64,000 nt of DNA from Ascidiella aspersa (Eukaryota), in the NCBI GenBank assembly GCA_963924565.1, contig OZ004609.1:6448001-6512000 (forward strand), given 5' to 3'. Positions 3,101 to 36,177 of the stretch are shown one piece after another. How positions within the stretch are numbered: position 1 is the stretch's first letter; each line of letters begins with the position of its first letter. Both the position numbers and the translations under genes were made by a program. The notes beneath the pieces are model-generated. The model searched no databases. It was not told where the DNA came from and saw only the letters and a list, made by a program, of their open reading frames with translations.

Positions 3101-6100
3101 TACTAATGCGGCAGACTTACAAGCAGGGTTGCGGAATATGACTCGAAACTCGGCGCTCGTCAAAGTCGGTTTGTTTTGCTGGAGTCGGACTCGAGACTCG
3201 GGAGTCCAGTAAGACTACGTAAGGCCACCTGATTCCCGATTGCGAAATGCGCATTACGCCATTTAAAAATAAATAAGTCCGCAAACTATAAATTGTAAAA
3301 GTGAAACAGAAACAGAGGAATATTTTCCACCCACATATTGTAGGTGGATAAAATAAATGACACACCTATGAGTGGATTGCTGAATAATTACTTTATATTA
3401 GTTACGCAACTAGGTTAAATACAAGATGTAGAGTCAGAGACGGACTCAACGAAATCGCAAATTTGACCGGAGTCGAACTCTTTTTTATTCGGAGTCGGGT
3501 ATTTTAATTTAAACCCCAGCCTTGCTTACAAGGTTAAAAAAGAATTCGGTTGCACACAAATAAACGAATAGTTATATGTTTTCAACTGCGAATTCCTTAA
3601 AAAATAATTAAATATTCATAATATTACAGTTGAATTGGACGAATTGAAATATATTGTTCTGAATCTTCCATATTTGTAGTTTTACGAGCTTCTTAAAACG
3701 TAACAGGCCCCTTGACTATACATTCCCCCGGGGTGGTCTCACAGCACACAGGGTCTATTATTACTAATACTACTTTTGGTTATCTTCACTTATGCTATGT
3801 TTTGTATTCCGTATGCCATTGCTATTTTTTATTAACACTTATGCAATTTTGAATTGCTAATTTGTTAGTTTTAGTATGCAAGATTAATAACATGGCGAAA
3901 AAGCTGGTTTTTAAACTAGCACTAAGTTAGTTTAAGTAACCATATTTTGTAAATAATGCCAATAATGAAGTAAATGGTTATATTAGTTTATAGAATCGAT
4001 TGGCCTGAAAACAGCAGTATTTTTTTCATCTTAGGGAGCAATGTATTTGTTGAAGGTGAGCTAATGTAACACTATTAAAGGCGTGAGGCTGCAATATGGC
4101 ATGTTTACCAGATAACCCACACCCGTATCGCCAACTTCGGTGTTGGCCTACCTGTAAATGATTAAGAAAATCCCCTGGCTCGGCCCTTGGGCAAAACTAA
4201 AGGATAGAACGACCAATTGAAAATGTTTTTTCTTAAGTTACTGTGATTAGAAAGTCTTTAGGTCAAAAGCCCTAATTAAATTTTCGTCGCTGTATATTTG
4301 CGTTTCTATCGACGCACATAATATTAAATGAAACTTAGCCACATAGCGCAGAGACAATGCAAATCGCATGTAAATCGTCCAGTGATTCGCGAAAAGCCAA
4401 TCGATTCCTTTGGGTATTCAAACCTATGTACATCAATGACCCTAACACTGACACAATTATACATTAGCATATAGATGCAAACGCGGAAGCAAATCAGTTG
4501 ATTAAAGCTTAACGTTCTTTGTAGGCTAATATCATATAAAATTGTAAAAGCGCTGACCCGAGGTGTTGGATTATTATGCTAGAGTGAAAGACTTACTTAA
4601 CTATTTTGTTGGTAAGTAATACGCATTAGTATACATATGACATCCTTAAATCTATATTATTAGAAACAACACGTTTGTTATGTTAATTTATACCTTTACT
4701 ATTTTTAAGGAAATTGTGAATCCCGTCTAAATTATACTTTTCTATACAACTTTTAATAAGTGAAAAACAAAAAAAGAGTTATGTTTACAATATACTTCAA
4801 AATCTCCCTACATCATAAGAGTATAATATAAAAGGTACTAACGCGTTTGAAATGATTCATAATTTGGAATGTATTGTAGCTTGTACCCTTTAATAATACC
4901 AACAATGATACTGTCAACGCGGCTGCGCATTCCGCAAATATTTGCGATACCCTTCACTTGTTTTGTCCAGATCGTGTAGCAGGATCGTATAGCGCGATTT
5001 GCGTAACCCGATAGCCAAAGTGCCCGTTATAGTCCGTCGTGTTGTGACCGGTGTATACCTGAAGCACTTGACGCGGTCCTTGAATCCCGTATAGAAGAAT
5101 CCGTGTTGTGCTAACACTGTAGGATTGACTGGGGCTGTTCGGGGAAATCGCTCGTATGTTGCCAGTCGATAGGTTTCCCGCTCAGAGTGACCTTGAAGGA
5201 AAAAAATAACTTAAAGTTTCTGGTTTTTCATGACACGTATATATCGCCGTTTCAGTATGCCAATGAATACAGTCAAACACTTGATTTTGATATGCTTTTT
5301 CGAAAATCCCCCATCTGGTGTCAGTCGGCCCCATTAAGTCAGTTACGTCACTACTATCGTCTTATGTCAAACACCGCAGGAGTCCAGCTTGTTGCTTAAA
5401 GGTTGTACACGGTGGTTTTCCATTTTGGGCTTGTGGGTTGTGGCACAGCAAAAAACGCAAAACAAATTTTGTGGCACACTTTTTATAGAACAAAATTTGT
5501 GACTTGACAATTACCCTAATAGGTGGACATCCAAGACGAAAATGTCTTAACACTAACGGTTTGTTATTGGAAAGTGTGCATTCAATTCTCACATGCTTGC
5601 ATATATGTGTGTTTCACATACAAATATTTGAATTGGTTATTTTCCAAAATAATTTTCTGGGTGCGTAATAAAACAGCCAACGCCAAGTTTCGTAGGCACA
5701 ATGAAAGAGTGCACACACGAGTTTCTGTGGGTGTATCAAAACAGCCGAGTCAGTTGCCTTTGAGTCACACCAAGATGTTTTGCAAGCATGCTATCAAATC
5801 GATTGCTTTAAACCAGAGGTTCTTAATATTTTGTTTACCGCGGACCCCTAAAATTTGTTTTGGCTTCGCGTGGACCACCATAGGCAAAAATCGTCAAAAG
5901 ATGACGTCATAAATTGACGTCACATTACAAATAAACTTCATAAATCTGTTGATTTTGGTCTAAAAACTGTGAAAGTGAAATGAAGTTTTAATACAGTCAG
6001 TGCAAAACCGTTTGGTTTTTAATTAAACTGTTTTCTTTGAAAAAATGATTACTTTTTAAAATTGTACTAATATTTCAATTTGGCCCTCATGGACCCCCTA

Positions 6101-15071: not shown

Positions 15072-15078
15072 CCTATAT

Positions 15079-15575
15079 CAGTGGTTCTCAAACTGGGGTC
15101 CGCGAGACAATTTTTCGGGACCACAAGGCACCTAACAAAAATCAACACGACGTTCCTAAAAGAAGAAATTTTTCTGTGCATTAAAATTTTCAGGCAACTT
15201 ACTTTTCCAAGCAAGCTGATTGGTTGTTTATTCACGTTATTGTAGGCTTCGAGTTAAATTGTGCATTGTGACGTCATAGTGTTGCATTGTGCTAATGGGA
15301 ATTACGTTTTTACAGCTGCTGCGTTGCCACTGCGAGCTGTGCCTGTGCGGTAACGGTTTTAAAACTGTACATTGCTTTACTTTAATAAAGTGATTCGTTA
15401 GAGGTTAACAAAGGCGAGCTGATAGCAAAGAAGCAAGTGCACCGTCCCATTGATACCATTAAAAACAACGTGTTATTTTGTGTTAATTTTTTTATATTTT
15501 CAAGGGACCGTGAGCAATTTAAAAAATTGGGGGGGACCGTTGCGTAAGTTTTTTAAAAAAGTTTGAGAACCACTG
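15079..15575. mobile_element. hAT-type MITE
   Basis: TIR CAGTGGTTCTCAAACT / AGTTTGAGAACCACTG; perfect TSD GCCTATAT (15071-15078, 15576-15583). Confidence 0.9.
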
Positions 15576-16447
15576 GCCTATATGGTTGAGCTTTTCTTAC
15601 AATTTTATTTGTTCGATACATATTGCAATCAAAATTAACCCGAAACATAATTTGACCATTTTCTTTCAGACATCTTAATTTAAACTAGACGGGGTTGCGG
15701 TTGTTGTACTTTTTTCAAGGGGTTATTTTATTTAGGCCTGTATTGTCATTAGTGGTTCAATAATTGGGTCATTATAAATAGGGTAATTTACCAGGGTAAC
15801 TCATGAAATACTATATATTACCCGTTTGTTTGTTGATTTTAGGGCATTGTTGTACTTTTCCTTGACTTCCTGCAAGCAAAAACAGATAAGGGCCGAAAAA
15901 TGTTTTGCCATTAAAAATGAATTTTCAGATGCAAAAGGTAGTTAGCCAAGAAAAACATTTTCTGTGATCGTTTTTTTGAAAAGACTATGCAAAATTCATT
16001 TATTTAAGTTATACCAACCCCGCTCTCAAGAAACTCCTTTAGACAAATACACAACGCAAAACAGTTTTTTCATAAATCAATTTTTGTAATAATTTGCCAT
16101 AAAATCACCCGATTGTTGGGTGATGCAAACAGGGATATGCAGCATCATTTTTTGACGGCTTGCTAGCGAACAATTTTCTATAAATAGTATATTGACATTC
16201 TAAAAACGGAAATAACAAAAACATAACGAATTCTGTATTGCAGATATGGCAACCGCTAGATAGGGGAAGAGATCTTAAAGAAAGGTATGCGATGACGTCA
16301 CTTTATTAAACGTGGGGTGAAAAGGAAAAAAATTATGTGGGTGAAATGGAAAAAATTAAAGCGTTTATCACTCATGTGTTATCACGTTATAACACTCCTC
16401 TGAATCAAATGCTGTATATTGATTAGGTACGTGAATTCGCTTTAAAT

Positions 16448-16577
16448 AAATTCATCAAAAAGGTAAATTAATCAAAATTGGAATGGTCAATTCATCAAAA
16501 TTGAAAAGGTACATTTAATAAAATTAGAAAGGCTAATTCATCGAAATTGGAAAGGTAAATGCATCAAAATTGAAGTT
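16448..16577. repeat. ~23-bp minisatellite, about 6 degenerate units
   Basis: Unit close to AAATTCATCAAAATTGGAAAGGT, repeated in tandem. Confidence 0.85.
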
Positions 16578-19483
16578 TGTCTCGGAAAATGGTATTATAA
16601 TCATTTTAAGTTTTTTTTTTCTACTAAACTTAAATTAACTAACTTTGATTTTATTGTTCGTAATAATAAACTTTACGTGTCTAGAAAAATGGAACTTTAT
16701 TAGAGATCTATGCCCACAAATAGTTTCAATAATTCCTTGTTAATGTTGATCATGAACATTAAGTCACTGGATGTAACACACCTTGAAAAATACTAGGACG
16801 TCGAACGTATATCGGGTGTGGCAAATCACAATTATTGAAAAGTCTTTTGAAAAAACAAAAGGCGATTTACCATCAGTCAAGGTTATGTAAGCAAAAGTTT
16901 TGTATCGTGAATTTCATCCATTGTGCGATCATTGTTGTTTGCCAAACTGTATTGCAGAGGTTATCAAACTTTTTAGCGTGCGACACAACAAAATAATATT
17001 CACGGCACACTTTCTACAAAACTACAATTTCATAACTTGAAAATCACATCTTCATCGCAAGACAAGGGGTGAAAGACTTAACGTTATCAGTTAACTAATT
17101 GCGTGGTGCAGTCCCATGTATGCTCGATTGCTTGCATAACTGTTTGGAATAAACGGAGAGATTTTTGAATTAACAAAACGTTCCGCAGTTATCAAACGAG
17201 CACACTGGTGTGCCCAAGTTGTGAAAAACTCTTGGAACTTAAGCTTGTTATGACGTACAAGCATCCACACTCAATCTTGTTGCGTAATTGCATAACGGCG
17301 AACACAACTGTAAAATGTCCGTGTGGAAAGCATGGTTTGTAGTCCACGCCACCATTGCACGTGGTCTATGCAAACTTGTTGTCCGAAAAGAAACGTTAAA
17401 TGATAATCTGAGTGGCACAGACGATAATAATATATTTCGATGTTGCCGTAATTTTGACTTTTAACATTGAATATAATCAATGACATTTGTCCATAAATGT
17501 CCATTATGTTTTATTTGCATGCGAAACATTTTGCACTTTTGGTGTGATTGCATTTTTCAGTTAAAATTTAAAATTTTAAGTCTTCCTAATCCTTGCGAAT
17601 AATTTCGTTTTTCATGGCATTGTAGCAATAAATAAACGTTGCTGTGTAATCGCATAACCTTTCTATTCATATCGAGCGTAACCTAGTTCCTCTCCTCCGC
17701 GGACCCCTAAAATTTTTTTTGCTTTGCATGGACCCCGGTAGACAAGAAATACTCCAAAATGACGTCATAAATTGACGTCACAAAACAAATAGTTTTCATA
17801 ACTCTGTTATTTCGGTCCAAAAAATGTGAAAGTTAAATGGAGTCCAACTATACATTCAGTCCAAAACAGTTCAATTTTTAATTAAAGTATTTTCTTTTAA
17901 AAAATAATTACTTTAAGTATACACTAGTTTTTTAACTAGGCCTTTATGGACCCCCTAAAACTAGTTCACCGACCCCCAGGGGGTCCATGGACCCCAGTTT
18001 AAGAACCCCTGCTTTAGTATGTTTCACTTTTCTTTACGTCGTTTTCGTTCAATCAAATAACACTTCATCCCTCAGCAAAGCAGTAGAACCACCCCCAAAC
18101 TGCAGCTGTGATATAGAACGTTTGTGCGCCCAACTGTGCCATAATGGATAAACGACGTAGATAAATTGTATTTTTGTTTAAAAATTGACTTTCCTAAACC
18201 CACTCAATTGCAACTCTGAATCAGTAGTCGCACATCTGCGAATTTATATCTAAACGTTACACATGGTGACATAATGAAAAGTAACTGTATGGACACCACG
18301 CAATTCGTTTATTTGGTTAAAGTTTTATACTGGTGTTACTTTTAATACAAAAGCTATAACAATGTTATTGATTCGCGCATGGCGCAAAAACGCTATTTTA
18401 TTTGAATCGTCAAAGTTGCCAAAAGTTTTATTTTCGATGTTGCGATAGGATGTACTAAAAACAAATTTATCCAAATTGGCTGAGACATTCTTGGAACAAA
18501 ATTAGTTTCGTGTGAAATGCGAAAATTGAATTTACTTAGTTAAAATTGCCATAAATACAGTTTTGGGTGCGGCCACGTGCCCCCCGCCTCTGGATCCACC
18601 CCTGCCTAAAGCTAAGAGTTGGTCCACCTTTGCAATACATCGCGTGATTGTCAGGCGCTCGCGTGATTGCCCGGAAATGAGTGAATGCGTTGGGGTCCAA
18701 ACTGATGGATAAGGGCTTTAACGTAATTTCCTTTAGATCAAGGAACTATTTAGCCGTACGGCCTCAACAAAGAGCTTAGCGTTTTGTTGTTGCACGCAGT
18801 TTGATGTAAGCGCCTTACTGCTGGAACGAGATAAATTTGGAAATTTGTGTAGGTTTATGAACTGCAATATCAGGTTAGTTTATGACATACAAATTTTAAC
18901 CCGTGATTCTTAACCTTTTCCTACCGCCTATCAGTTTGTGGTGTTTTTACTGTCGCTATGTGCCACCTGCTTTCAGTATAAATCATTTTACTCAAGCTTA
19001 CGCAGCTTTAATACATATTCCTATGAGAATAAATTGCGATTTAAGCAAAAATACGAATATGTATAAATACGGGTAACGCCGTATAATTTTTGTTAGCGGG
19101 GTGTGCGTTTGGGCAAACCCCATACTTTTAAAAAACGTAATAGCTTTACATTTGGGTTTATTGTTTTGTTTTCCACTTGTGCCTGAAAGCTAATAGTTAA
19201 CCGTGTGCTGAAGGTTGAGAAGCACTGATTTAAACAAATCAAGTTTAAAAAGTTTGTTTAGAACCAGAAAAGAAGGTTTTAGGTATGATCAACTTGGTAT
19301 GAAAAATGACAAAAAAATGTACAATCAACAAGTTGAATACCGGTACTGATTAAATGATTTTGCAAAAATTGAGTTGTTTTGTCTGTTATTTTGAACATAC
19401 AAGCGTCAGGTTAAAAAAACATGAATAAGCCAAGTTTACATGATTAACTTTTTTTTTGAGCAGGCTTGTGTAAAGTTGAACTT

Positions 19484-22400
19484 ATGCGAGTGAAAATGGA
19501 CGAAGCGTTAGAGGAACTTAGTGAAAATGTCCAAGATATTAACTTGGTGAGTGTTTGTGTTCAACTCGGGGGTGAAGGTACATGTATTTGCATCGTAACC
19601 CATTAAAAATTTGAAATATGACGTCACAGAGTTACGTCATAACGAGTGACTAAAACAAGCAACCTTTAGGAAACGTGAGGTGGTCGTTCAGTCTAATGCA
19701 CAAACATGAAATTTATCTTAGCTTTAAATACATTTAGGAACAAAAAATACTTTATCGGAACGCCGTTCCGAACCGTTTTAGCACAGGTTCAACCTGTAAC
19801 AAACTATTTCACGGCAATATTGCGGGAACATACAGTGAGAGCTAAAAAACAACTACATCGTATTTCGTTTTGATACCTTGTTCAACTCTCAGCTATTGAT
19901 CCTACTTTTGGTCTCATTCCGAACTGTGTTTTGTTCCGATGTTGATGTTACTTAAATTTAGGTCTTATCGCTGGAACGCCAACTTACCTTTATTATGTGA
20001 ACAGAACAACGCAATTGTTATCCCTGGAGGAGAAGTTCACCTGACAGAAGTCACCCAAGTGACACAAAATATCAACGTCACAGAAGTTGTCTACATCGGT
20101 AACCTGGGCAACGTTGTTGGAGCAGATGACGTCATTGCCTCAGGTGAGGCTATTTTCTTTTATGGATATTTTTTTGAAGTTACGGATCCGATAGGTGCAC
20201 ATTTTAGTTTACCACAGCGAGTGTAGGTAAATTGGGTTTAGCGTCAGATGGGTAAAGAACGAATATGTGTTGAAATGATGTCGGCAGTTTTTCGCTTCTG
20301 GTTTGTTACTTGTATTCTATAACTATTGGTGGAAACCAGGGCTGCGGAGTCGGAGTCGGACCCGGGCTCGGGACTTGAGGAATCAGTTTGTTTTTGCTAG
20401 AGTCGGATGGACTCGGGACTCTAGTAAGACCTTCTAAAACTACCCGAGTCCCGAGTCCGACATGCGCATGCGCAGTACCAAATTTTAAAACCGATATGGC
20501 CGCCAAATAGAAATTTTAAAGATGGAATATTATATGGTGGAATATTTTCCGACCATGTATTCTAAGTGAATAAATTATACGACACCCCTATAAGTTGGTT
20601 GCTGAATATCCACGTTATTTTAGTTGCGTAAAAGGGTGAAACACAGGTTGTAGAGTCCGGGCCGGACTCGGGACTCGAGAAAATCGAACATTTGGCAGGA
20701 GTCGGACTCGGGAGTCGGACTCGGGTTATTTTTAACCGACTCCACAGCCCTGGTGGAAACTATGATAAAGAATTTTTGGAGAATGTCGGTTTTAGATTAA
20801 CAGGTGTGCCGCAAAACGTTTTGTAATTTTGGGAAAATAAGTTATTTGTACTACCAAATGGCATACACGCATGTATTTTGACCTAAACACGCACCACCCT
20901 TTACAAATTAGTAATATTGATTTACATATAGCTTGTCGTGTGTTACGGGCGATTGTAACATTGCTCTATTGTTGTTTTGTTAAACGTGAGTGTCGCGAGC
21001 TAAAAAAGGATAGGAAACCACTGGTTTTAAGGCTTCACTTGTCCAACCAATTTAGAGTAATGGCCGATTGTCACTGCATGCAATGATTTATTTCGTGATT
21101 TTTGTTGCAAACGTGCAGGTTCTCGCATCGCCTCGCTTGAACAACGAGTTGAAAAGAAAGGTAAGTTCGACATATTTCTTTTTAATAAATCTTTAAAAAA
21201 AATTAATAATCCAACAAATAGAAATAAGTTTAGTTGTGTTTTACCCTGAGACCACAAGACCTAACGTTCACATGCGTCGGTGTGACTTTTCCTGGGTAGG
21301 TTTGTACGACTGCAAAACCCAGCCCTTAATTTGATTTTGTCTAATGGAGAACTGTTTGAATCTGTATGAACATATTAAAGCGCTACTATGACGTAAATTA
21401 TTTTTGAACAATTTTAATTGAATTTCAAACTTCGTTTTAATTTACTCTTAACACGAGGAAGCTCCCGGGCGTTATTTACCAGGCTCTCTCGGGTACACTT
21501 ACACCAATTGGCAACTTTATATCTATTTAACTACTTTGCTGTCCCGTGTAAATAGCCTCTTCCAAATTTGAAGCTATGTTGAATTTATGTGCATAATACT
21601 CAGAAAAAAGAGTTTTAAAATAATAGTTTGCGTCATACCGTCACAAAGTGCATCCTAAAATTTCGTTATTTAAAAATAAATAATAAACAATGGCCATAGT
21701 CGTTGAAGTAAAAGCACATTTAGCCTTTCCACATGGCCGCTTCAAAGGTGGCTTTAAAGGTGGCCTGGCCACCTTGCCTCCCAAAAAGCCACTTTTCCGC
21801 CAAAAAGGTGGCTTTTCGCTGGCCCTACTCCAGAGTAGGTCCAGGCCACTGTGGCTTTTGCGAAAGGTGGCTTTTGGGTGTGCGTATCGTAAGGTTTTCG
21901 GTTTGCCCAGTTCACCTTCTACCTAATTTCGGTTTATGTGTTGTTAAGTGACGATTTTTACGCAGCCATGTGTTCCATAGCGAAGGCAAGGTACATTTTA
22001 GTGCCAAAAGGTGTATTGTAATTAAAATTTAGGCGCTCGTCTAGAATCCTACCACAACGAACATTATTTGGGTTAGGGTGCCGGTTTGGGTTTGGGTGAG
22101 TCCAGTAATAGTGTTAAACAATATTACTTGACCTACCCACACCCAAACACTAACCGACACCCTAACCCACATATTATGCATTGCTTAATAATCATTTCAA
22201 CGTTGTGGTAGGATTCTAGCAGCGCCAAAATTTATTGTATAGTTAACGGTTTTAGAATACTGTGTGCTAGGTTCACCTTATTTTGTACTTTGCAACACAC
22301 GTTGCTGTGATTTAAACGATCAGTTTTTTTGCGTGACAAAGCTATTTGCAGCTGCCACAACGTGTTTGGAGAGGTCAGCAGCACATGCCTTGTTATGGAA

Positions 22401-25400
22401 AAAATAATTTTGCTGAGGAACCAGCAGTGGCTTTAGAGCTAAATTGCAGTATGTTTATCTGTTTTTGGGGGGGTATTGTATATTTTCTAAATCACTTCGG
22501 TGAGTGTGTGATGCTATATTTTGCTAACAACTTACCAACAATATTTTTTGGTTGTTTTAGCAACTGTTCTGTATTTTAATTATCTTGTTACAAAACAAAA
22601 GTGTTATTTCCTAACTTTAATTCTCTTTAATAGCTTGCCATGAATTCTAGGGCAAAATGGTCAGAACAAGCAACCTGTAATCTTATAATTGTATTCAATA
22701 GAATAATTTGTTGGAAAAATGAATTTGAAAAATGTCCGATTTTTTGTTTGACGCAATTACAAAGGATATTCCTCCTCAAAGTAAGTGCATGAAGATTTTT
22801 CAATTTGTTTGCTTATTTTTAATGACAATTCATCAAACAGTTTACGAACAAAATAACAAATGGAAACAAAATCAAGAAACTTGCAATGACCTTTGTGGTG
22901 GTTTAAATAACTTTGTCCTCATCAACCAAAGCAATGTCTCGACCATATTTCCAACTATTAAACAGAATATTAGCATCCTGTCCTAGCAGTATGGTACGTT
23001 TTATTGCAATTTTAATTATCAGGTAATATATTGCTAAATTATTTTCATCCTGCTGTTTTTTTTGACAACTTTTGGGTATTTAAATATGTTCTATAATGTG
23101 AAAAGTTTAGCAGTGTCTTGCTGTCTTTAGGCATCCGCCAGTGAGGGTGTTGAATTGATACCAATTCAAACTCAGGAACATCAATTCTCATCTCAAGCTG
23201 TTGACAACTGATGAACCAGCACACCACAGCAGTCGCTGAGTCAGTTGGGGTAACAGGTAAAATTTGAGTTTTATTTTGTTTATTTAGTAAAACTTTTAGT
23301 TTTGTCCGCAACGACAAATTTACTTACTACTGAACTTCAAATCATTGTTTTTATATTGTATAGAAAATGAATCAGAAAAGTCTTTGGACGAAATGATAAA
23401 CTTAATTGCTGATGAGGGTGAAAGGGATAGAGCAAAGATTTCACAAGAAAATGGAAAGATGATCAATGCAATGGGAGAATAAAAACATTATTGATGCCCT
23501 CCCTTAAAGTAAATAACTTCCCATACTTTGGTAGCTTTAACTGAATTTGTTTATACCTTTCTTTTTAAATGGTTTTTTAAAATCACTGTTTGTCAACATA
23601 TTAAAGAAATGTTTTTTCTTGTTCGTTTTTGTCATTCTGTTTTTTAAATGCACTGTACACGTTTTTTTTTTGTAATTTATTATCTTGCTATAACATTTTT
23701 GTTATTAACATTTGCTATACATTCTTGAGTTTTTATTTGAATAAACATTTAAAAATATCAAAATTGATAACTTGTTATCTTTGCACAATTGTCAGCAAGA
23801 TATTGACAGATGATGTTCCTCACTAAACTATTCTCTGTTGAGCCTGTACCTTGTGGTATAATGGCAGGTAACCTTGTGGTATAATGGCAGGCTTAGATAT
23901 ATCTCTATAAAATATGGAAGGTCTGGGGTTCTTTTATGTTAACAAATATTATGCAAAATACAACAAATTGTGAAAATCCTTGGTGCATCTGAAACTTTGA
24001 CAGCAATCCGCTTTTGCAAAATCATCTTTAATAGGAAAAAATGAGGATATAACAATTTGTAGTCAGCAACCGCGGTCTCTTTCTTACTTTTGGTTTCCAA
24101 ATAAACTTGTCTCTTTTAGCTACTATTTCATATATCTCCAAAATACTACATCTTGGCAATAATTTTTCGGTCTGTTATCGCTTGTATACCCAAAGACAAC
24201 CGTACGAATGATAGAAAACTCTGGCACAAACAGCGTTCACTTTATCTAAACGGCCATGTGAATTGACCGCTAAAAGTGGCCAAAAAAGCCACCTTTTTCA
24301 GCCGGCCACCTTTGAAAAAGCCACCTTTCAAGTTGGCCATGTGGAAAGGCTAATTGTAATGTTATTCTAGCTTGTAAGCGAGCAATTTAACCGACGGCTT
24401 TTAGAAGCCATTGCTTTTGGAAAAAAATATTGGTGCTGGTCTAGAATCCTCCCACAACCAACATTATTTAGGATAGGGTTTGGGAATATTATTACTAAGT
24501 GATAACTGATAATACTTGACCCATCCTAACCTAAATATTGTGCGTTGCATTAGTAATTGCTTAAACGCTGTGGTAGGATTGTAGACCAGCACAAATTGTT
24601 TTATGTAATTTGCGTGGCTAACACCAACGTATTTTTTCACTTGTTTTAGCCATGTATTATTCTTATTGTGGATTGTTTGCATTGGCTGCCATGACCAATA
24701 TTATTTATTTTTAAATTTCACAATTATTTTTTTAGCGTTGGTAGAATCCTACCACTTAGTCTTACCAAAATGAGTAGTTGAAATTGCAAGAATAAATATG
24801 CATATATTGTTTCTGCCAGGCATTTCTTCAATTGTAAAATTGCTCTTATGGAATTTTTTAACGAAACACCTGCGTTTTTCACTAGCGGCTTCAGAAAGCC
24901 TTGTTTTTCATATTGTCCGGGTATTGGGTGTTATTCTTGTTTTTTTCACACCTTGTGGTTTAGATCGTGGTCCATAGTGTTTTTCCTTTTTTTGTTTGTC
25001 TTGTGTATTTTGCACCTATATTGTTGCAAAATTATATTACCCTGAAGAAAACTGCCTGTATATAGGTGGTCGAAACATGGGTAACTTTAATTTACTACAA
25101 TTAAGGACAAAATATTTATGGGAGAATAAATATAATATTGATATTGTACCCACCACTTTCTAGTACCACTTGTCGACCCTGTTAAAACTAAGCTTTTAGT
25201 TCTCTTATTTCGGTGCTGGTCTAGAATCCTACCACAATTATTAAAGTGTTGTTATATGAATCATTATATAATAATAATACTTGACCCACCCTAACCCAAA
25301 CGACAACTCGCACCCTAACCTAAATAATGTGTGTTGTGGTAGGATTTTAGACCAGCGCTCTTATTTCTTATGAATTATATTTTTGTCAAATACTACACCG

Positions 25401-28400
25401 CGACCCCCCAGTTAACCCCTTGTGAGGTTGGGAACCACTGTAATAGATAATATGCGCAAATCCCCGACCCCACCATGCCACTGTGCAGTGTGTTACCATT
25501 ATCGTTGTATTTCTTTGTGAACATTTGCTTCAATGAACATGTATTTTGCTAAATATTCCACAAACACTCGAATTATGTGAAATGTTTTATGTTCTCAGTC
25601 TCTCAGATTGTTATGTAAATATGTGTTCTTGTATATTTGGACAATGGATATAGGCTACCAACTTTTTTACTGGTTAGTTTAGTTGACATAGCAGATAGCA
25701 ACAGTTCTGATACTGTTCTAACAGTTATTGTTGTGTTAAAGTGGACCTCAAGCCTTAAGACATAGGCCTAATATTAAGTGCATTGTTGTGGTTGTCCGTA
25801 GTGAAGTTATTTTGATGAATTGTTTATTGAATTGCATAATAGCCATTAATTATAATGTATGACCCTGTGGCCAGTTTTGAAAAGAGTTAGGCCGGATGAT
25901 TTGCATTTGGCAGTACGGAGGTCAATTTTGCCAGCTAGGGATTTTCAAAGTAAAATATGGGTATAAAAGAGAAAAACTCTTAGATATTTTAAATACTGCC
26001 AGTTATTCATGTTTTTGGAGAGTCAAATTTTTTTTAAATCGTTTTATTGCAGAAGTTGTTTGTAATTTGAATATAACAAGAAAGTGTCAAGTTTTGATGC
26101 GTCTATCTCTGTGGTATTATTTTCCCTAACATCCCCCAAGATGAACTTTCCTTGATATTACCTATCAGTTGGTAGTATGTAGAAGTGTCTTCCAAGTTTG
26201 TTGAAAAAGAAAAAGATTATTTAAACAAGGTGTATTGCAATAGACTTGTTTATTTCATTTAGGTGTAGGCTACTGGTAAGTAGGTGCCGGCTCCCGCTGC
26301 ATAAGTCTTTTAAGCGTTCCTTTTCAGTACAGACTCCAAAAAGCAGACCACTGAAATACCTGTCCTTAACTTCTTTAACTCTAGACCAAGTCACTTCACT
26401 CAGTTGATGTTGCTCGCAAAGTCGCAATGTTCGGTGCTGATCACACCTTAGTGAACACCGGTTAAATGTAGAGTGGTGTCAAATTAATGCTTGATAAAGG
26501 CACCAATAGGTAAATGTGGCCTCAAACTTGGTAATGTAAAGTATAGATGGATAGAGCTTTAATTGCTGGTTAATGTTTGTAATTTTCATCGTAGCTTTGT
26601 TTCTTTATTTTGTGTTGTTCCTTCAAGGTGTGTCTTTGTAGACTTTTGTTTGGTTATGTGAGGCTTAAAGTTCAGTTTGTTTGATATTATCTTCTTTTCA
26701 ACTGTTTGGTTTATTTTAAATTTCCCAACTTTAGACAAGTCATTTTTAATTCTCAGATGCAGAGTTGCGAGCAAACCAGATAACCGTGGCCAACATTAAA
26801 GTCAAATCTCAAGAAACCATCTTGGTTGAACTCCTGGTAGTTAACAGGAAGAATGTTGAAGTAGAAGGTTTTCACGAAATATTGTTCTTAAGCGGCAATG
26901 AGAACAATGTTACTTGGCTTAAGGTGGATGAATTCTGTCTGGCTGCAAAAGAAAATGCAATTAAAGAAGCAGAATCTAAGTTCAGCGACCAGGCAACGAA
27001 AACTAATTACATTGCAAAATATGGCAACTTTATAGTTATTACTGGAGGAGCTGGCTATGGCAAAACCACTTTGGGGATACAAATTCTGCAATATGTGTGT
27101 GATACTGAACCTGAATGTGGCTACATTTTCTATGTAAACCTGCCATCGTTAGACAACAGCAAAGAAATGAGTGTTTTTGAGTTCCTGATAAAGCTATTCA
27201 ACTCAAACTGGCAATATCATTTGGAAACAGATAATAAAATTCTGGAAAGAATCTCCAAATCCAATAATGTGTGGATTATCATGGATTCAATGGATGAAAC
27301 CGGTTTCAATCTATCAATGAAAGCACCCGTCATTGGTTTGTATGATAGAGCAAAACCAGAAGTCATTCTCCAAAACCTTTTGCGATCTGACATTCTTCGC
27401 AATGCTTTCAAGTATCTTATAACACGACCAGAAGCATATCTACAGTTGGACCCGGATTGCAAGTCACACTTTCCACTTGAGGTACTTGGTCTGGGCAAAA
27501 ATTCACAGGATTTACTTTTTAAGGAAATTTGCCAAAGTCAAGAGAAATATGAAAAGGTGAAAGAGGTTCTCAACCAAAATCCAGCAGCCAATGTCTTAAA
27601 CTTCATCCCATTATTTGCCAAAGCAATTCCAAAATACATTCTGAAGTATGGATTGGATGGTGGTGCATTTACTACTACTGATGTGTTCACATCTTATCTG
27701 AACGACTATATTCGCTCAGCTCACTTCAAGAATCACCCAAGTGTTCTTCACAAGCTCTCTGAATTAGCTTTGTTTGGAATGCTCCAAGAGAAAGTCGTCT
27801 TTAAAGCACACGATTTGGCCAAAGTTGGACTTGAAACAAACGGTTTGGAAGATTTTCTCAAATTTCAAGTTCAGTCTAATGATATCGGCCTTAAAATTCT
27901 GGAAGGAGACAATTTAATTTTGTTCAATCACAAGCTCCTGCAAGAGTTCTTCTCAGCTCTCAAGATTATGCTTGACACCCCCATTGAACGGTTTACAAAG
28001 CTACTGGAAAACTTAAAAAGTGTCAAGTGGGAAATGGTTCTTCAATTTATCTTCGGTCTGCTCAATCCGAAACTCCAAAGAAAGCTAAATGCACTGTTTC
28101 CAATCTCCTCAGCTGATGTTTCTGCCAAGAGAGGTTTGCTTAAGAATCTGCTTGTTAACATGGCTAAAGATTTCGCCCAAACATCTGAGAATGATTTCCC
28201 AGTTTCACTCCCTTTGTTATTTGAGCTAAATTTTGAGACTCATGCAAAATGGCAAGAGTTCCAAGGTCGTCCAGATGACAAGAGGTTGTTCAAGCTGTGC
28301 AGTCTCGCCTACGAATCTATGCTTGATGGCATCACAAGATCGGTTGTGGAAGTTTTTCCGGACATGGTTTTGCTTTCGCTCACGATTCTTCCCAGCCACA

Positions 28401-31400
28401 TGGCGAGTCTCTGTCATGTGCTTCGCGCCTCCGACAAACCAATCACTATCAACGTTGGAGCTTTCGGGGAACTAGCCAAGTTCATTGGTGATGGATTAAA
28501 ATTGCTGATTGAGACCGTTGCTGAAACACCACACACGGTTAGTTATTTAATAAATATATAAAGTATAAAATAATACTAATGTAGTTATTGCTTTTTTGAT
28601 GTATTTTGCTTTTCAGTGCTAAATAAGGCAACTAATTTTAGTCATAATTTCCCTGTATTCAAGTTTGCCCTGGCTTGATGCAGTTACTGAAAGTGCTTTT
28701 TTGTAAGTACTTTTTTGCTTTATGCTTCCAACCTTCGCATGTTATCCAATTCAGCTATTGTACCAATACAAATAATAATTAATCAATACACAGGCGCATA
28801 ACTTTTGACATTCCTTGGCATTTTTTTAACTAATTGCAGAATTAGGGTTAGTGACTTTAACACCAAGAATGTTGATATTTTACGATGGTATATAAATTAT
28901 GAGGTTTTAAAAGAAAAGTTTTAAATACAAAGTTTTTTTCTAATTACATATTTGGTAGTCAGTTATTGTTTTCCAATTCGTTACCAGAGGGGGGTTAACT
29001 CCAAATGGTGAATTCATATCAGTTTAGTTTGTGGTTTGTATATATTTACAACTAGCAAGCAACTTTTAAACATTTCCAGGCGGTACATCCCCTATTTAAT
29101 GAGGTATTATAGCTCTGTGTTACATTACTTGGGGACAAACAATTAATTCAGGTTGTTGAATATCTAGTTGGGTTTAGCGCGCTGTTTTTCACACATCGCT
29201 ATATTTTAGATACGCAAGTTCTACGTAGATGAGACCGCCATCAGCATTGCAACTCTTGCGCCACTGATTCCACACATGGAAGAATTGACGATCTGGCATG
29301 GCAACCTTTCTGTCGACGACATCAAACTTATCTGCGAAAGTCTGCAAAGGAAAACACAACCGGTAATAAATTAACGGCAATCATATTAAGTTTATAACAA
29401 ATTACATTATAAAGTTCAGTATATTATGACAGTGCAGAAAATTTCCTCCCTAAAGTAAAATAAAAAAATATATAGATGCTTTTCTATACAAAAGCACAGA
29501 AGTTTTACGATTGAAGTCATTTACTCTGTGTTATATTAGATTACATGCAGGTTGTCAATGTTGATGTGTGACACCTGAATTGTTTACATAAAACCTGTAA
29601 TTCCATTAAAGTCACTTGCATAATATGGCATAAGATATAGTCAAACCAGGCAAGGAACTGGTACAACTTCATCTACTTTGTTGCATTTAGTTAAAGTTTC
29701 TTAACCTGAGCTACAACAATCTCGATGAAGCTGGGGTGAAGCTGCTATCCGGGTGCATCCCCTACGTTGAGAGGCTAAGTATCAAGCAATGTGGACTCAC
29801 ATCGGACCATCTCCTGGTGTTGGTGAGCAGCATCGAACAACGACAACATCGTGTGAGTTTCTACAAGGTGTAGTAGTATTGTGTGATATTTTCGACACCC
29901 ATCCAATACAAGGCAATATGCAACTAACAAAAATTGGCTTTGTGGTTTAATCCAATGGTTTTAAACTGATCAAATTTGCGTAAAACTAAAATTGCATGTT
30001 TAGCTGCGAACACACAATAGACTTTTTTGCAAACCAGCACTATATGAACCCGAATTTTCTGTAAGCATCATTTTTTTGACCACAATACAGTAATAATATC
30101 TGTGACGGAACGAGACCTAAACATGTTTGAGAAGTCCTAAAATATTTGAAATAAGATCTAAATGCAAAAATAACACTTTAAACTGTAGGGATACGGCCTT
30201 CTATCTATTGATATGTTGCCTGGTGGAGCTAACTCTACTACTACTTGTATATATTTATTAATCATTTAACTCCTATTTTGTTTGGGGACAATGTTGATCA
30301 TAATATACACTACATGGCCTACAGTGATGGCAATTAATCACCAAACACTTTGCTAACATTTGTATATTCTAAATAAAAATAATCTCCTAAATGTTTAAAA
30401 CAAAAGCATGAAAACGTGATACATATACCAGTGTTTTGCCAAACTTTAATATTTAGCCCATTGAGTACAATGCAACACAATAAACTCCTTAAGAAATTCA
30501 ATCCCGTTTTATAAAGCATTTTTGTGTGTCAGTTCTCACTTAACTACAAACGTGATCTGTTATACAATCAAATAATGTGGTTCAAAAAATGCAAAGTTAT
30601 CATTGCCAGTAATGCATAACCCATACTCAAATAATTACACCGTGCATATAACCTCGACGAATATCTGCCTGAAGTTGACCTTAAGTAACCTCGTAGCGCA
30701 ATTTTGCCAACGCCAGCACATTTTAGATGGAATGTTACTTATCTCGCTTTAAGGAAAATGCAAACTCTGCACCAGGCATAACACGTTGCTCGCTCGCCCA
30801 ATAACGCTTGATTGGCACTTAATTATTAGGCTAAAGTTATCACGAGACGTGGAGTAATTGGTCGCCCGGAAACACGATGACGCTGCACTACCTAGAAACT
30901 TTTAAAGTAAGCAGATGTCTTTATCTCGACTTGCCACCCTCGTTTACACAATCAGGCGCAACCATCCGCAGTAAAACGAAGTATTCAGTATTGTTCTTTG
31001 AACATCCATAAATGAAACCCTACGATAAATGAATTTAAAAAACACTCCACGATTTGACGCAAAACTAGCAATTTAATGTGTATTTGAATGTGTCACTATT
31101 TGTTGGTCTTGCCATCATCAGTGTAAAATACAACTTGTATGTTTACACTAATGATGGCATTGGGTATTCTCGAAACGTTCGTTAACAGAATATGATGGAT
31201 TTAGTATTTTTATTGAAATTATTTTTGTGCTGCAAAGTTTGTTGGTCTTACTTAATAATAGTTTGAGTATTGAGTCCCCAGGAAGCCTTTTATAGCTGTC
31301 TGATGTTGTAGCTGTTATACACTTGGCATCAGTTTAGTGTTTTTGTTCTTGTGTGCTCCACTACGGGAGGTATATGTTAGTGTACGTCAGTGCTTCTCAA

Positions 31401-34400
31401 CCTATGGGTCGCCACCCAAAATTTTCGCTGTTCGATTTGGTTGGGACGCCGACCGCAGTAGATCATATGTTTATATACTAATTGAGATTGGTTCTGAGAA
31501 AGATTTCTTAATTAGGAAAATTAAGGAAGCAATACAAATAATGTCAAATTCGGAATTCTTTATGCTAATGCCTATTTTTTGTTCGCTTACAAGAAAAACA
31601 ATTGAGTCGCCAAAGCCTACTCGTCATACTTACGCTTAATGTTTGGGTCGCCGAGAAAAAAGGTTGAGAAGCACTAGTGTACGTAAAGGCTTATAATAGC
31701 AGTTACCTCACCTGCATACTATTACCTAACATACGGTAACGCCCAGGCAACCAACTAGTAGAACTTTGTATATTTTTTTTCATATAGATTGAGTTTCTTA
31801 ACTTGAGCTTCAACAATCTGGATGAAGGGCTGAATTTGCTACCCGAGTGCATTCCCTACATTGAGAGGCTCAGTATCATGCAATGTGGACTCACATCTGA
31901 CCAACTTATGGTGTTGGCGAGCAGCATCAAACAACGACAACATCCCGTAAGTTTTAACAAAGCAAAACGAGACTTAGAAACTCTTGATTGCCGAACCCGA
32001 CATTTCCATGCAATGATCGCCCTCAGTCAGACCAGGGACGAATAGAATGTGGTTCCAGATAATTAATTAACCCAATCCACAATTTACAGTTCCATACTTT
32101 TGGTGAAATATCATTGAACTTTGTGTCATTGTGTTTATTTTATACAAATCCACAATTTGTTTACAATAACTTATTTTCCACCCTTGTTAAAATGTGCCTG
32201 CCCATGTTTTGGGACGTTTGCCGCTTTTAACAACACAAACCATTTACAGAAATTTGATCAACATATTAAAAAGTAAAAGAATTCCAGACAGGAAATAATT
32301 TTGCCCCTTGTTTATTTCTGTTGTCTAAACCTCCTTGTATTTATGCAAATGGATTTGTTGCCCTTGTTTATTTCTGTTGCCTAAACATCCTTATGTTTAT
32401 GCAAATGGATTTGTAGCGAATGTAGGTATGCAGTTACGAGTAAGAAGGCGCTGGTTCTTAAGGAGAGGGCCGACAGCTGCCAAAGTCGCTTACACGTACT
32501 TTTATCTAACACCAAAGGAGCAGGCCACTAAAATAGCTGTCCTTAACTTCTTGAACTCTCGACAAAGTCACTTCACTAAGTGAATATTGCTCGTTGAGTT
32601 TCACAAATCTCAAAAACACACGGTATAACGAAGCGTTGATTCAGGCCGCACATAAGTAAGACGTATTTAAAAAGAATGAATGCGAAACGCTAAAAGCACC
32701 CAGTTCGGCGCTTGGTCTCGCGTCAGTGAATAACGGTCACGTGTATAGTGACGTCAAATTAGACAAAATCGAGTAATTTTGCATGTTAAATACTTCAGTT
32801 GCCCTTGTTTATTTCGGTTATCTAAACCTCCTTGTGTTTATGCCAATGGTTTGTTGCCCCTGGTTTATTTCTGTAGTCTCAACCCCCTTGTGTTTATACA
32901 GATGGATTGGTTGAACCTGAGTGGAAACAAGATCGGGTCACGTGGTGCTGGTTGCCTGGCAACTAGTGCGCACAAATTGAACAAGCTGTCGATGGAAGAT
33001 TGTGGAATCGATGAAGTTGAAGAACTGACTGAAGCAATCGCACGCAGGGAGCATCCAGTAAGTTGCCTTATCTAAACTCGATCGTGGCTTCCAGGGCGCT
33101 ACCACAAGGATTTATATATATCTTTAGATTTACCAAATTTCATTAGAAAAAGAGTGGCTTATATAAATGATAAATAACGAATTCGCGGTTTTCTCAACCT
33201 CATTTTGCCGCACTGAAGATGGCATAAGTACTTGCCGACACGTATGCAAATAAAAGAATGAATATTTTATCATTTATTTCCGCTACTCTTTTTGTACAGA
33301 ATATGAACAGATCCGTGTTTAGTGTTCCCAAATTTCATTATTGTGTCAAAATATGACGCAAGAAATTCCCGCAAATTGTGGCTAATCATCAAGGGTGGAT
33401 AAAAGAGTGATCGCCACCAAAGCTAATTTAATTTTTTTTTATTTATTTCGAATCATTCCCTGAGTAACCATAATGTTGAACTCAAAACTACAAAATTTAG
33501 AAGAAATTATTAAAAAAAAATATTTTGGTTCGTATTGAGGTCAAATAAATGTCTTTTCAGCAGCGTCGTTGAAGTGTCTGACCTGAATTAGTTTCTATTT
33601 TAATCGCAGCCTCGGATTGCATAAGAGAGTAAATGTATGAAGAGAAATTATTGGAATTATGAAGAGTCTGTCGTTAGTTTTTCATTGCGATAAATATTTC
33701 GTTTCAGTTCGGTTTGGTTATATATTCTTCGTCATACAGCGGTGAACACAATTAGTGGCGAAATACACCTGGCATATTGTCACCCCTTTTCGTTTTTTAA
33801 TGTGCAGGAATTGTAGACCGTCGTAGAATTATTCCCAGTATTAAAGTCTAATCTAAACACTAAATCGAATCGGAGCCCATACTTGGGTGATATCATGGGC
33901 GCCTTTCCTATCAATACCAATTTAATATGGGAAATTCAGCCATGATTTGCGGTCTCCGCAATTATTCTACCTTCAAAGGTGAAATTATCAACAAAACATT
34001 GGTAGGTTAACAAGGGATGTTTAAAGTAGTATATCGGATTATTAGATTGGAATCCATTTCATATCGGGTAACTGGAACCAAGATAGTTTACTGTTTTACC
34101 GTGTAAGGATGTGCCTAATTGTACATACGCGTGGCAATTTTGGATAATGACCTGTAGCTGTGGCAACACTTTTATCGTGCTTGCTTTAAATCAAGCCATG
34201 TCGTGCTTGCTCTAAATATAGCCAGTCAGCGTTTTTTCATGTAGTCAGCGTTTTCCCCCCACGGCTTCAGCGTTTACCGCCGCCTAATAGCAACTAAAAG
34301 TGTCAAACTAGCGATATTGGGTGAGCGACTAAAGTGTAATGCCAATGCAGGGAATTCGCAATTTCCTTAAATGCGAGAGTGGCAAAAGTAACATTTCATC

Positions 34401-36154
34401 GTATAACGTGCTGACCTATAGGCAATAAAGAATAGTAAACGCATTACTGGCAGTAGTAACTTTGTATTCTTTGCAGCAAATTATTTGGCAGGCGTAATAA
34501 CCGAATACGTTTGTAGTAAACTAAAACACAACAACATCTTATAAAACGAACTGAATTGTAAAGAGTTAAAAGGAGAAGGTAACTAATAAATAGTTTAAAA
34601 TATACTAGGATTCAATATTCTGGATCCGTTATTCTAGATACGAAACCTAATTTTTGTAGAATACCTTGGGATTACTTTAAATCCCTATTAACAAATGATG
34701 GTAGCCAAACTTCTCGGGCTTTAAGCAACTTTTAACCTGGAAAAATCATTTTTTAACGTTTATTTTCATCTTGTTTGACCATAGCAATGACGTCATTTGG
34801 TATATACTATTGGTATCGGAATAAAATGTTATGTATCTAGATCTTAAGACTGTTTATTTATTAAAACAGATAAAACATAAAATCATTTCTTAAAATCGAA
34901 TGATTCATTCGAATTAAGAAACTGATGATGCCTTATAGGCGTAATATCTGTTTTAATAAATAAACAGTCTTAAGATCTTTGGAAACAAAGACAAGAATCT
35001 TTCTTTTACATTTTATTGTCCGCGGGAGATCCTTACTTTCTAAAGTGTTTCAGCGTTATGTATCTAGATTTGAAATATACTATTATATGAGCCTCCATTT
35101 GTTATGAACATTCACGAGTGTAAGTTTGTTGTTTACCTCCACTTGTAATTTTTGGCAGATGGAGGTTCTCAATATCCGAAACAATCCACTTGGCGACCGC
35201 GGGGCCAGTGCGTTGGCAAGATGTCGTGGTAAGATTGATAGGTTGTTCAGTGACGATTGCGACTTTACATCAGCTGGAAAGCAAGAGTTGGAATCGGCCC
35301 AACGACGCCACCAAGTGAGAACTTGTTTCAACTATTCGCTGTTCAACCGAGCCGTTAGAAATTAGTGCAGATCTAAGCAAAACGGTCTACGACAATTAGG
35401 GCATTTAAGGGCAAAAAAGACTTTGAGGTCGTGGTAATTCACTAATTTGTAGACCTTTGTGAGGTCGTGGTAATGCACTAATTGGACCTTTAGGTAAACT
35501 CCCGGCAGAGATAAAATGAAAATATTGGCTGAAAACTCACAAAAAATAAGAATAAAACTGTGAGAAAGAATTAAAAATACTTTACACACGCTAACCTGAA
35601 CCCTAATCCATATAATGTGCGTTGATTAAATAATTATTTGAACGCTGGGAAAAATCCCAAACTCGGGTGGGCATCAGATAATTTCTCGTCCATTGTATAG
35701 GATTGTTATGTCACACATTGTTGTATTGGGGCCTAAAGCGTTTATTCTTATTAAATCAATTCAAAGTCTAAAAGTCAGACTTTTCCCTCATTTGAATGCC
35801 GTAATTGTCGTAGACTTTTTTGCCTAAAACAGCACTATTTTCTGACGGTTCTAGTGCGCTGTTTGATAAATTTGCATATTGCTGATAGTTGAACAACTGA
35901 CTGATGGTTGCTTTACGAGTAGAAACAACAGAATCGTGATTGTTCTTCGATAATTTTATTATATCCTGGTGTTAAAATAAAGCAACACAGCACGAGGAAA
36001 CTTTTGCCAATCAGCTATCGATACAGGATCTTGATAACCGTATTTAAAGGATTGAGACCACATTTTCAACGTGTCTGTCTTGTTTTTAACATCCTTTTCC
36101 CCCTAGGAAAGTCAACCAATCAAAAGAGGTTCGAAACAATGTCACGTGATGTGA
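19484..36154 (+). CDS. NLR (NACHT-LRR) immune receptor, ~952 aa, with RHIM-like N-terminus and CaaX C-terminus
   Basis: Phase-compatible exons: 19484-19546, 20005-20143, 21119-21160, 26757-28537 (NACHT: Walker A GGAGYGKTT, Walker B VWIIMDSMDE, sensor-1 LITRP, IPL, winged-helix FNHKLLQEFFSA), LRR exons 29210-29362, 29691-29852, 31788-31946, 32902-33057, 35159-35314 (LxxLNLSxNxL-type), and terminal exon 36107-36154 followed by AATAAA at 36172. The NACHT-LRR core is secure; the first three exons and the last exon are less certain. Confidence 0.88.
20337..20752. mobile_element. hAT-type MITE (GGAGTCGGACTCG-rich family), copy 2, in NLR intron 2
   Basis: TIR CAGGGCTGCGGAGTCGG-like / CCGACTCCACAGCCCTG; perfect TSD GTGGAAAC (20329-20336, 20753-20760). 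Confidence 0.9.
21721..24352 (+). mobile_element. Non-autonomous PIF/Harbinger-class DNA transposon with decayed Myb/SANT-like ORF, in NLR intron 3
   Basis: TIR TAGCCTTTCCACATGGCC / GGCCATGTGGAAAGGCTA; 3-bp TSD ATT; subterminal AAAGGTGGC repeats at both ends. Disrupted reading frame from ATG 22640 (MNSRAKWSEQATCNLII…FDAITKDI…NKWK) resembles Myb/SANT. Confidence 0.75.
22032..22226. mobile_element. Palindromic MITE with GG…CC ends (Merlin/Mutator-like), nested in the Harbinger-class element
   Basis: TIR GGCGCT(C/G)GTCTAGAATCCTACCACA; 8-bp TSD AAAATTTA. Further copies at 24432-24592, 25212-25359 (TSD CTTATTTC) and ~54975-55123. Confidence 0.8.
31388..31676. mobile_element. hAT-type MITE in NLR intron
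   Basis: TIR CAGTGCTTCTCAACCT / AGGTTGAGAAGCACTA; perfect TSD GTGTACGT. Explains the spurious ORF 31337-31639. Confidence 0.88.
32301..32910 (+). repeat. Four ~56-bp copies of an LRR exon acceptor region, split by an interspersed repeat
   Basis: Units start at 32301, 32358, 32799 and 32854. The insert at ~32415-32790 shares sequence with ~26270-26410. Confidence 0.8.
33210..33247 (+). ncRNA. Degenerate minimal type I hammerhead motif (Penelope-like element terminus)
   Basis: GCA-CTGAAGA-T-GGCA(loop)TGCC-GACA-C-GTA-TGC, followed by AATAAA. One core mismatch (GAAA>GACA). Confidence 0.5.
34839..34978. repeat. Perfect 34-bp inverted repeat around a hammerhead-like remnant
   Basis: 34839-34872 is the reverse complement of 34945-34978. 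Confidence 0.85.
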
Positions 36155-36171
36155 AGCAATGAGGCGTGACC

Positions 36172-36177
36172 AATAAA
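36172..36177 (+). promoter_or_regulatory. Candidate polyadenylation signal of the NLR CaaX exon
   Basis: AATAAA 17 nt after the TGA at 36152-36154. Confidence 0.5.

Follow-up and report, generated by a model that had tools for sequence, protein, structure and literature searches.

A 64,000-nucleotide (nt) stretch of the Ascidiella aspersa genome (GenBank assembly GCA_963924565.1, contig OZ004609.1, positions 6,448,001 to 6,512,000, or C3:6448001-6512000; hereafter the window) carries a gene for a NACHT-LRR receptor in which three short exons precede the NACHT exon. In the present study, this gene was compared with its relatives throughout the 308.6 Mb genome, and searches and folds were made exon by exon. 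A GH6 domain match in the genome agrees with a sea-squirt origin. The results suggested that the gene is lineage-specific and that its short exons encode a non-globular leader, consisting of conserved anchors and a variable spacer, with a probable role in docking or self-association. We assign this reading a probability of roughly 0.55. The new element is an exon design that at least 50 NLR genes in the genome have in common. A sequence-only reading of the window had placed a RHIM-like core in the leader; this claim fails testing, so it is the exon design of the whole family, rather than the degenerate copy of the window, that gives the observation its value. The N-terminal module of this family is defined, conserved and very short, and with it the signalling of invertebrate NLRs without a death fold could be tested.

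Three short exons ahead of the NACHT exon

The NACHT exon (26757-28537, + strand) begins in phase 1 behind the acceptor TTCTCAG and ends at a putative donor, ACG/GTTAGT, read from the sequence. It matched the Pfam models NACHT (2e-15), NOD2_WH and NLRC4_HD2, and it comprises pre-NACHT helices, a nucleotide-binding domain with the Walker A motif GGAGYGKTT, a winged helix and HD2. The AlphaFold2 (AF2) model of its residues 1-300 had a predicted local distance difference test (pLDDT) score of 84, and the best Foldseek matches of the NACHT exon model were NOD2 and NLRP3, with an E value of about 1e-11. The AF2 model of the pre-NACHT part shows a helix at residues 2-17 and, besides two short strands, a pair of helices that pack against the nucleotide-binding domain; a six-helix bundle would not fit there. 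Downstream, at 29210-36177 (+ strand), lie leucine-rich repeat (LRR) cassette exons of the RI type, seen as open frames, and a terminal exon taken from the sequence-only reading; four of the cassette exons show the LxxLxLxxN pattern. Single LRR exons matched the LRR_6 model at E values of 5e-4 to 6e-3, which is under the curated cut-off because each exon is one repeat only. Taken together, the Pfam, AF2 and Foldseek results and the LRR cassettes indicated that the gene encodes a NACHT-LRR receptor. A protein-level homologue search with the NACHT exon returned matches at 27-29% identity only.

The NACHT exon cannot start the protein by itself. An in-frame TAA sits three codons before its acceptor, and no in-frame ATG lies ahead of its P-loop; therefore, upstream coding exons are required. 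Exon 1 was first read as 19484-19546 (+ strand), ending in phase 0 at the donor GTGAGT; its coding part, 19496-19546, opens with a conserved start codon and encodes an acidic peptide that ends in ENVQDINL. Exon 2 (20005-20143, + strand) runs from phase 0 to phase 1 between the acceptor AACAG and the donor GTGAGG, and without it the frame would be lost, since the phase is 0 at the end of exon 1 and 1 at the start of the NACHT exon. Exon 3 (21119-21160, + strand) is 42 nt long and symmetric, from phase 1 to phase 1, and it encodes the peptide SRIASLEQRVEKK. The AG and GTAAG borders of exon 3 were kept in L041, L042 and the C1 paralogue L045, and the acceptor of the NACHT exon was kept in 20 paralogues. 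Comparison of the window gene with the paralogue loci revealed five conserved blocks only, namely exon 1, exon 2 together with flanking sequence, exon 3, one segment of intron 3 and the NACHT exon; the introns around exons 1-3 were less conserved than the exons. The proposal that the three small exons splice in phase to the NACHT exon was thus borne out by AG/GT borders and phases that can be read from the sequence and are conserved in paralogues. These results suggested that exons 1-3 are genuine 5' coding exons of the NACHT-LRR gene, a model that is well supported by the paralogue comparison on which the joins rest.

The start codon proved to lie further downstream than was first read. The ATG at 19484 reads GTG in all C8 paralogues, whereas an alignment of 10 paralogues showed that the conserved start codon is the ATG at 19496, in the context aaaATGg; translation most likely starts there. 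The preceding part of exon 1 (19464-19495, + strand) would then be 5' untranslated region, behind an acceptor whose AG occupies 19462-19463. This acceptor, gagcag, was kept across the C8 paralogues, and an upstream exon therefore probably exists. A 1-nt deletion between the acceptor and the ATG in L003, an in-frame TGA immediately before the ATG of L048 (a paralogue at 47% identity) and the lack of any conserved upstream coding exon in a tblastx comparison of 6 kb upstream of a C8 copy with 19 kb upstream in the window suggest that this exon is untranslated.

Exon 2 as a family-wide N-terminal exon

In the window, exon 2 consists of an N-anchor (NNA-IVIPGGEVH), a minisatellite remnant (TEVTQVTQNINVTEV) and a C-anchor (VYIGNLGNVVGADDVIASG). 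The same parts were recognized in other copies of the exon. The consensus of the N-anchor was N-[LAT]-[FI]-x-G-[AG]-[EQ]-V-[HQ], and that of the C-anchor, which is about 25 residues long, was G-D-h-[YH]-h-...-G-N-V-x-A-D-D-...-G. In the C8 copies, the N-anchor NNAT[IV]F[PA]G[AG]EVH[VL]TEV is followed by a variable count of TQN[IT]NVTEV units, then by a variable count of RNVTEV or TEV units, and finally by the C-anchor NVQNMV[AM]GDAYFGN[LP]GNVV[EQ]ADDVTA[RS]G. In other subfamilies, the repeat unit was HETKEFHT or HETHEHH. Tandem Repeats Finder (TRF) detected 27-nt and 18-nt arrays in exon 2 of L014, so the repeat is a coding minisatellite, and both the repeat unit and the copy number turn over fast between paralogues. 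Among 20 copies, the length of exon 2 ranged from 103 to 340 nt; it was always 3n+1, with AG/GT kept and no stop codon. The window copy, with 139 nt, was longer only than those of L016 and L020. It keeps about 1.5 repeat units, its NVQNMV-GDA part is missing, and TRF found no tandem array in it. By this comparison, the window copy appears as a reduced example of the exon type, in which nearly the whole repeat and a portion of the C-anchor have been lost.

The distribution of these exons followed that of the NACHT exons. About 32 paralogues, with NACHT exons 80-83% identical to that of the window, lie in an array on C8 at 0.3-1.75 Mb, and further NACHT copies were found on C3, C1, C6, C4 and C7. 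In total, the genome holds at least 283 NACHT candidates, and the NLR family is located in internal and chromosome-end arrays. The pattern formed by the 3' end of exon 1 and its donor occurred at 37 genomic places, compared with 0 for the reversed control. In nearly all cases, one exon-2 homologue was paired with one NACHT exon, which followed 8-14 kb downstream in the same orientation, and all of the exon-2 matches (44/44) lay upstream of NACHT exons. A profile of the C-anchor matched at least 51 genomic places, nearly all of them 1-15 kb upstream of a same-strand NACHT exon. The exon design, which combines phase 0 to 1, a length of 3n+1, AG/GT borders and both anchors, was also present in distant subfamilies, including the C3 gene at 47% identity and copies mostly near the ends of C1-C5. 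The design shared across subfamilies and the C-anchor profile matches therefore indicated that exon 2 is a family-wide N-terminal exon with a rapidly changing repeat.

Selection on the exon was weaker than on the receptor core. The ratio of nonsynonymous to synonymous substitution rates (dN/dS) was 0.46 for the exon-2 flanks within C8 and 0.28 for the NACHT exon, which points to a weaker constraint on the anchors. In a search of 1.84 billion protein representatives, exon 2 matched unrelated low-complexity repeat proteins only, and the ESM Atlas gave no usable match. The AF2 model of a long paralogue exon 2 had a pLDDT of 39.7 and showed extended strands without a fold, and a complex prediction with four copies of exon 2 scored 0.02, which is uninformative as to self-association.

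Several loci outside the main array were also observed. L051-L058 (C2:0.46, 0.99 and 39.69 Mb; C3:0.34 and 39.33 Mb; C5:32.47 and 33.17 Mb; C7:24.08 Mb) carry exon-2-type exons with HETKEFHT repeats. Six of these eight loci were 91-96% identical over about 3 kb, non-coding flanks included; the loci lie mostly near chromosome ends, and in several of them a NACHT exon follows at a distance of 1-9 kb. By its sequence, this group looks like a chromosome-end NLR family with interchromosomal sequence exchange. The C1 paralogue L045 (C1:8531500-8541499; 66% identity) has one TAA within its NACHT exon, and its exon-2 analogue, at about 4598-4685, encodes 30 residues with no repeats; it may represent the state of the exon before expansion or a decaying copy. 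At C5:15257010-15257057 (+ strand), the C-anchor profile gave a partial match (E 7e-5) with no NACHT exon listed in its vicinity, which makes it a candidate non-NLR carrier of the C-anchor.

Function of the leader and competing explanations

The leader occupies a position that usually holds an effector domain. Whole-genome six-frame scans detected 15 Death, 3 CARD and 3 DED matches, but none of these models, among which PYD was not included, had a match within the window or the C8 array. The proposal of an NLR N-terminus without a death fold is in agreement with these scans. A death-fold exon was also looked for upstream of the acceptor at 19463 and in the intron 21161-26756 by the same domain scans, tblastx and open-frame analysis, and none was found; intron 3 contains no long open frame. 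Within that intron, the block at 25441-26206 is 70-78% conserved in about 20 paralogues. A hidden coding exon was considered for this block and rejected, since the block holds no long open frame and does not look coding; it could have a regulatory role or derive from an old repeat that was copied in the duplications. With so few death-fold matches against at least 283 NACHT candidates, the NLR expansion in this genome appears uncoupled from death-fold adaptors. The NACHT-LRR genes of another ascidian, Ciona, have likewise been described without an N-terminal effector domain (PMC11508797), and the gene of the window resembles them in being a NACHT-LRR gene without an N-terminal CARD, PYD or Death domain, of which PYD lay outside our scans. 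In that paper, however, short N-terminal exons, anchors and a coding minisatellite are not described, and the family here includes at least 283 NACHT candidates.

According to the reading that we prefer, the leader would be formed by exons 1-3 together with the N-terminal 17 residues or so that the NACHT exon contributes. It would be short and non-globular, and it would pass from the acidic peptide of exon 1 through a beta-prone low-complexity segment in exon 2 to a helix that probably starts in exon 3 and continues into the NACHT exon. The anchors could act as short docking or self-association motifs, and the repeat between them as a variable spacer. NACHT oligomerisation would bring the anchors together and so replace the death-fold adaptors that are largely missing from the genome. 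The earlier description of a beta-prone peptide on an exon of its own, in the usual place of an effector domain, is retained in this reading. As in exon-encoded minisatellite proteins, the 27-nt and 18-nt arrays are in frame and differ in copy number between paralogues; unlike in those proteins, the array stands between two motifs conserved across NLR subfamilies, on a single exon (phase 0 to 1) that encodes the N-terminus of a receptor.

The claim that the exon-2 peptide is RHIM-like or nucleates amyloid was not supported by the profile, conservation, chance and partner results. Exon 2 had no Pfam match to RHIM (PF12721) at E values up to 10, nor did 18 paralogue exon-2 sequences; the whole-genome scan with this model gave only noise, in short unrelated frames with E values no better than 0.2, and no match at these loci. 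The canonical Q of the RHIM core (I/V)-Q-(I/V/L)-G is missing in the window copy, which reads VYIG. Conservation of the motif among paralogues held for the exon and the anchors and did not hold for the tetrad, which aligned with AYFG, VHIH, VHQY or IHIH; the tetrad segment is absent from L016 and L020, and half of the C8 copies read GNPGN. In composition-matched shuffles, [IV]x[IVL]G occurred in 46%, or in 7.6% if a trailing N was required, and the relaxed tetrad is thus at chance level for the composition of exon 2. PDB sequence and profile searches at E values up to 10 returned no HET-s or RIPK chain, and the top PDB matches were chance ones, such as thymidylate synthase. The Pfam HET-s prion domain and the other Pfam families did not match exon 2 either, and we conclude that exon 2 is not a RHIM and corresponds to no named domain. 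Of the partners that had been expected to share the motif, no non-NLR gene was found, beyond the candidate match on C5, by whole-genome peptide and profile searches, the sensitivity of which is limited for short motifs, and a TRADD_N scan found none.

The idea can also be put in a more general form. The C-anchor, with or without the repeats, would be an amyloid or prion-like signal that nucleates a cross-beta structure on NACHT oligomerisation and templates an effector, as in NWD2/HET-S or RIPK1/RIPK3. In its favour, at least 51 NLR genes have, at the N-terminus and instead of a death fold, a conserved motif of about 25 residues that contains G and N and alternating hydrophobics, an arrangement (a short motif ahead of a STAND NTPase, in NLR 5' exons with no death fold) that is looked for in NLR-associated amyloids; the genome is poor in death folds yet rich in NACHT candidates; and AF2 gave the repeats extended strand. 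QLGNVV and LIGNEY, both from the HET-s repeats, resemble IGNLGNVV, a likeness that no search detected. In Branchiostoma innate-immune proteins, RHIMs have been reported at effector-domain positions, and NACHT is among the domains drawn in Figure 1B of Kajava et al. (2014, PMC4262963); like the leader, these are short non-globular motifs where an animal immune protein usually has a death fold. Tunicates, however, seem to lack RHIMs (PMC4262963), and in contrast to RHIM and cRHIM proteins, the present sequences do not match the RHIM model, and they neither contain nor conserve the (I/V)Q(I/V)G core. The catalogue of NLR-associated amyloid motifs is confined to fungi, bacteria and archaea (PMC12261475). 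The leader is similar to HET-s/HRAM, sigma, PP and BASS in that a short motif lies N-terminal to a STAND NTPase in rapidly duplicating receptors. Those motifs are defined by a matching motif on a neighbouring effector gene, none of which was found here, and they gave no sequence match; moreover, the tandem repeats here are charged, variable in number and built of 6-9 residues per unit. The lack of RHIM or HET-s matches by Pfam, genome scan or PDB profile, the variation of the core, its loss in two copies, the Pro of GNPGN, the charged His/Glu/Lys units of other subfamilies, the unpaired acidic residues in every repeat unit, the chance-level tetrad and the failure to find the motif in a non-NLR gene all speak against an amyloid signal, which we therefore regard as improbable.

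A more far-reaching proposal can also be made. In tunicates, which have few death-fold domains, the NLR effector domain would have been replaced by a lineage-specific one-exon assembly tag, made of two beta-prone anchors and a hypervariable minisatellite, that polymerises in an amyloid-like or beta-solenoid-like manner on NACHT oligomerisation, with the repeat number tuning threshold or specificity. We consider this proposal speculative and at least as doubtful as the amyloid signal. If true, at least 50 genes would carry a signalling module of a class new to animal NLRs.

It is less probable than docking or self-association, although a serious alternative, that the leader has no specific function beyond supplying a start codon and a flexible tail, with the repeats as tolerated slippage in a fast-duplicating array. 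The free variation of copy number and unit type fits this explanation, as do the copies without a C-anchor and the window copy without a repeat; the low-confidence predicted structure, the restriction of matches outside this genome to unrelated repeat proteins and the range of flank dN/dS (0.46-0.74, against 0.28 in the NACHT exon) point the same way. Nevertheless, both anchors and the exon design persist across NACHT subfamilies that are only about 47% identical, the frame is intact in all copies examined, and dN/dS within C8 is below 1. That the small exons lie outside the NLR transcript, as parts of another gene or as chance open frames, is very improbable: the absence of junction reads leaves the joins unobserved, but dozens of paralogues have these exons in fixed order, strand and spacing ahead of their NACHT exons, the phases fit only with exon 2, and the NACHT exon has no start codon of its own.

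Some results weigh against the reading of the leader as a docking or self-association module. The exon spliced to the acceptor at 19463 was not located, and a coding exon could lie more than about 6 kb upstream or be specific to a subfamily. For the window exon-2 flanks, dN/dS against C8 was 0.74, based on 34 codons only, and constraint on the window copy may be relaxed. For the anchors, a part in docking or self-association is what we infer, and no partner was identified. In RNA-seq data (one run, of which about 6% was sampled and compared with 15400-21400), the depth over exons was at most 0.37, and no junction reads were detected at any join. NLR genes are usually weakly expressed, and the low depth is uninformative as to whether the gene is silent.

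Repeats around the gene

The RNA signal was confined to repeats, at 17.6-18.2 kb and in a miniature inverted-repeat transposable element (MITE)-like element of intron 2. The latter, found by an inverted-repeat search at 20335-20754 and outside the gene product, is about 420 bp long with 19-nt terminal inverted repeats. The RNA reads on it come from other copies, because their fit is partial and they continue into unlike sequence. The repeat at 17611-18212, about 1.5 kb upstream of exon 1, had an RNA depth of 6-13 and many opposite-strand joints (17697/17996), and it looks like an expressed inverted-repeat element. Further upstream, 15400-15600 had an RNA depth of about 2.4 on both strands. The segment at 15073-15582 is 75-80% similar to the region upstream of a C4 NLR paralogue (L047, 5508-6104) and is probably a repeat.

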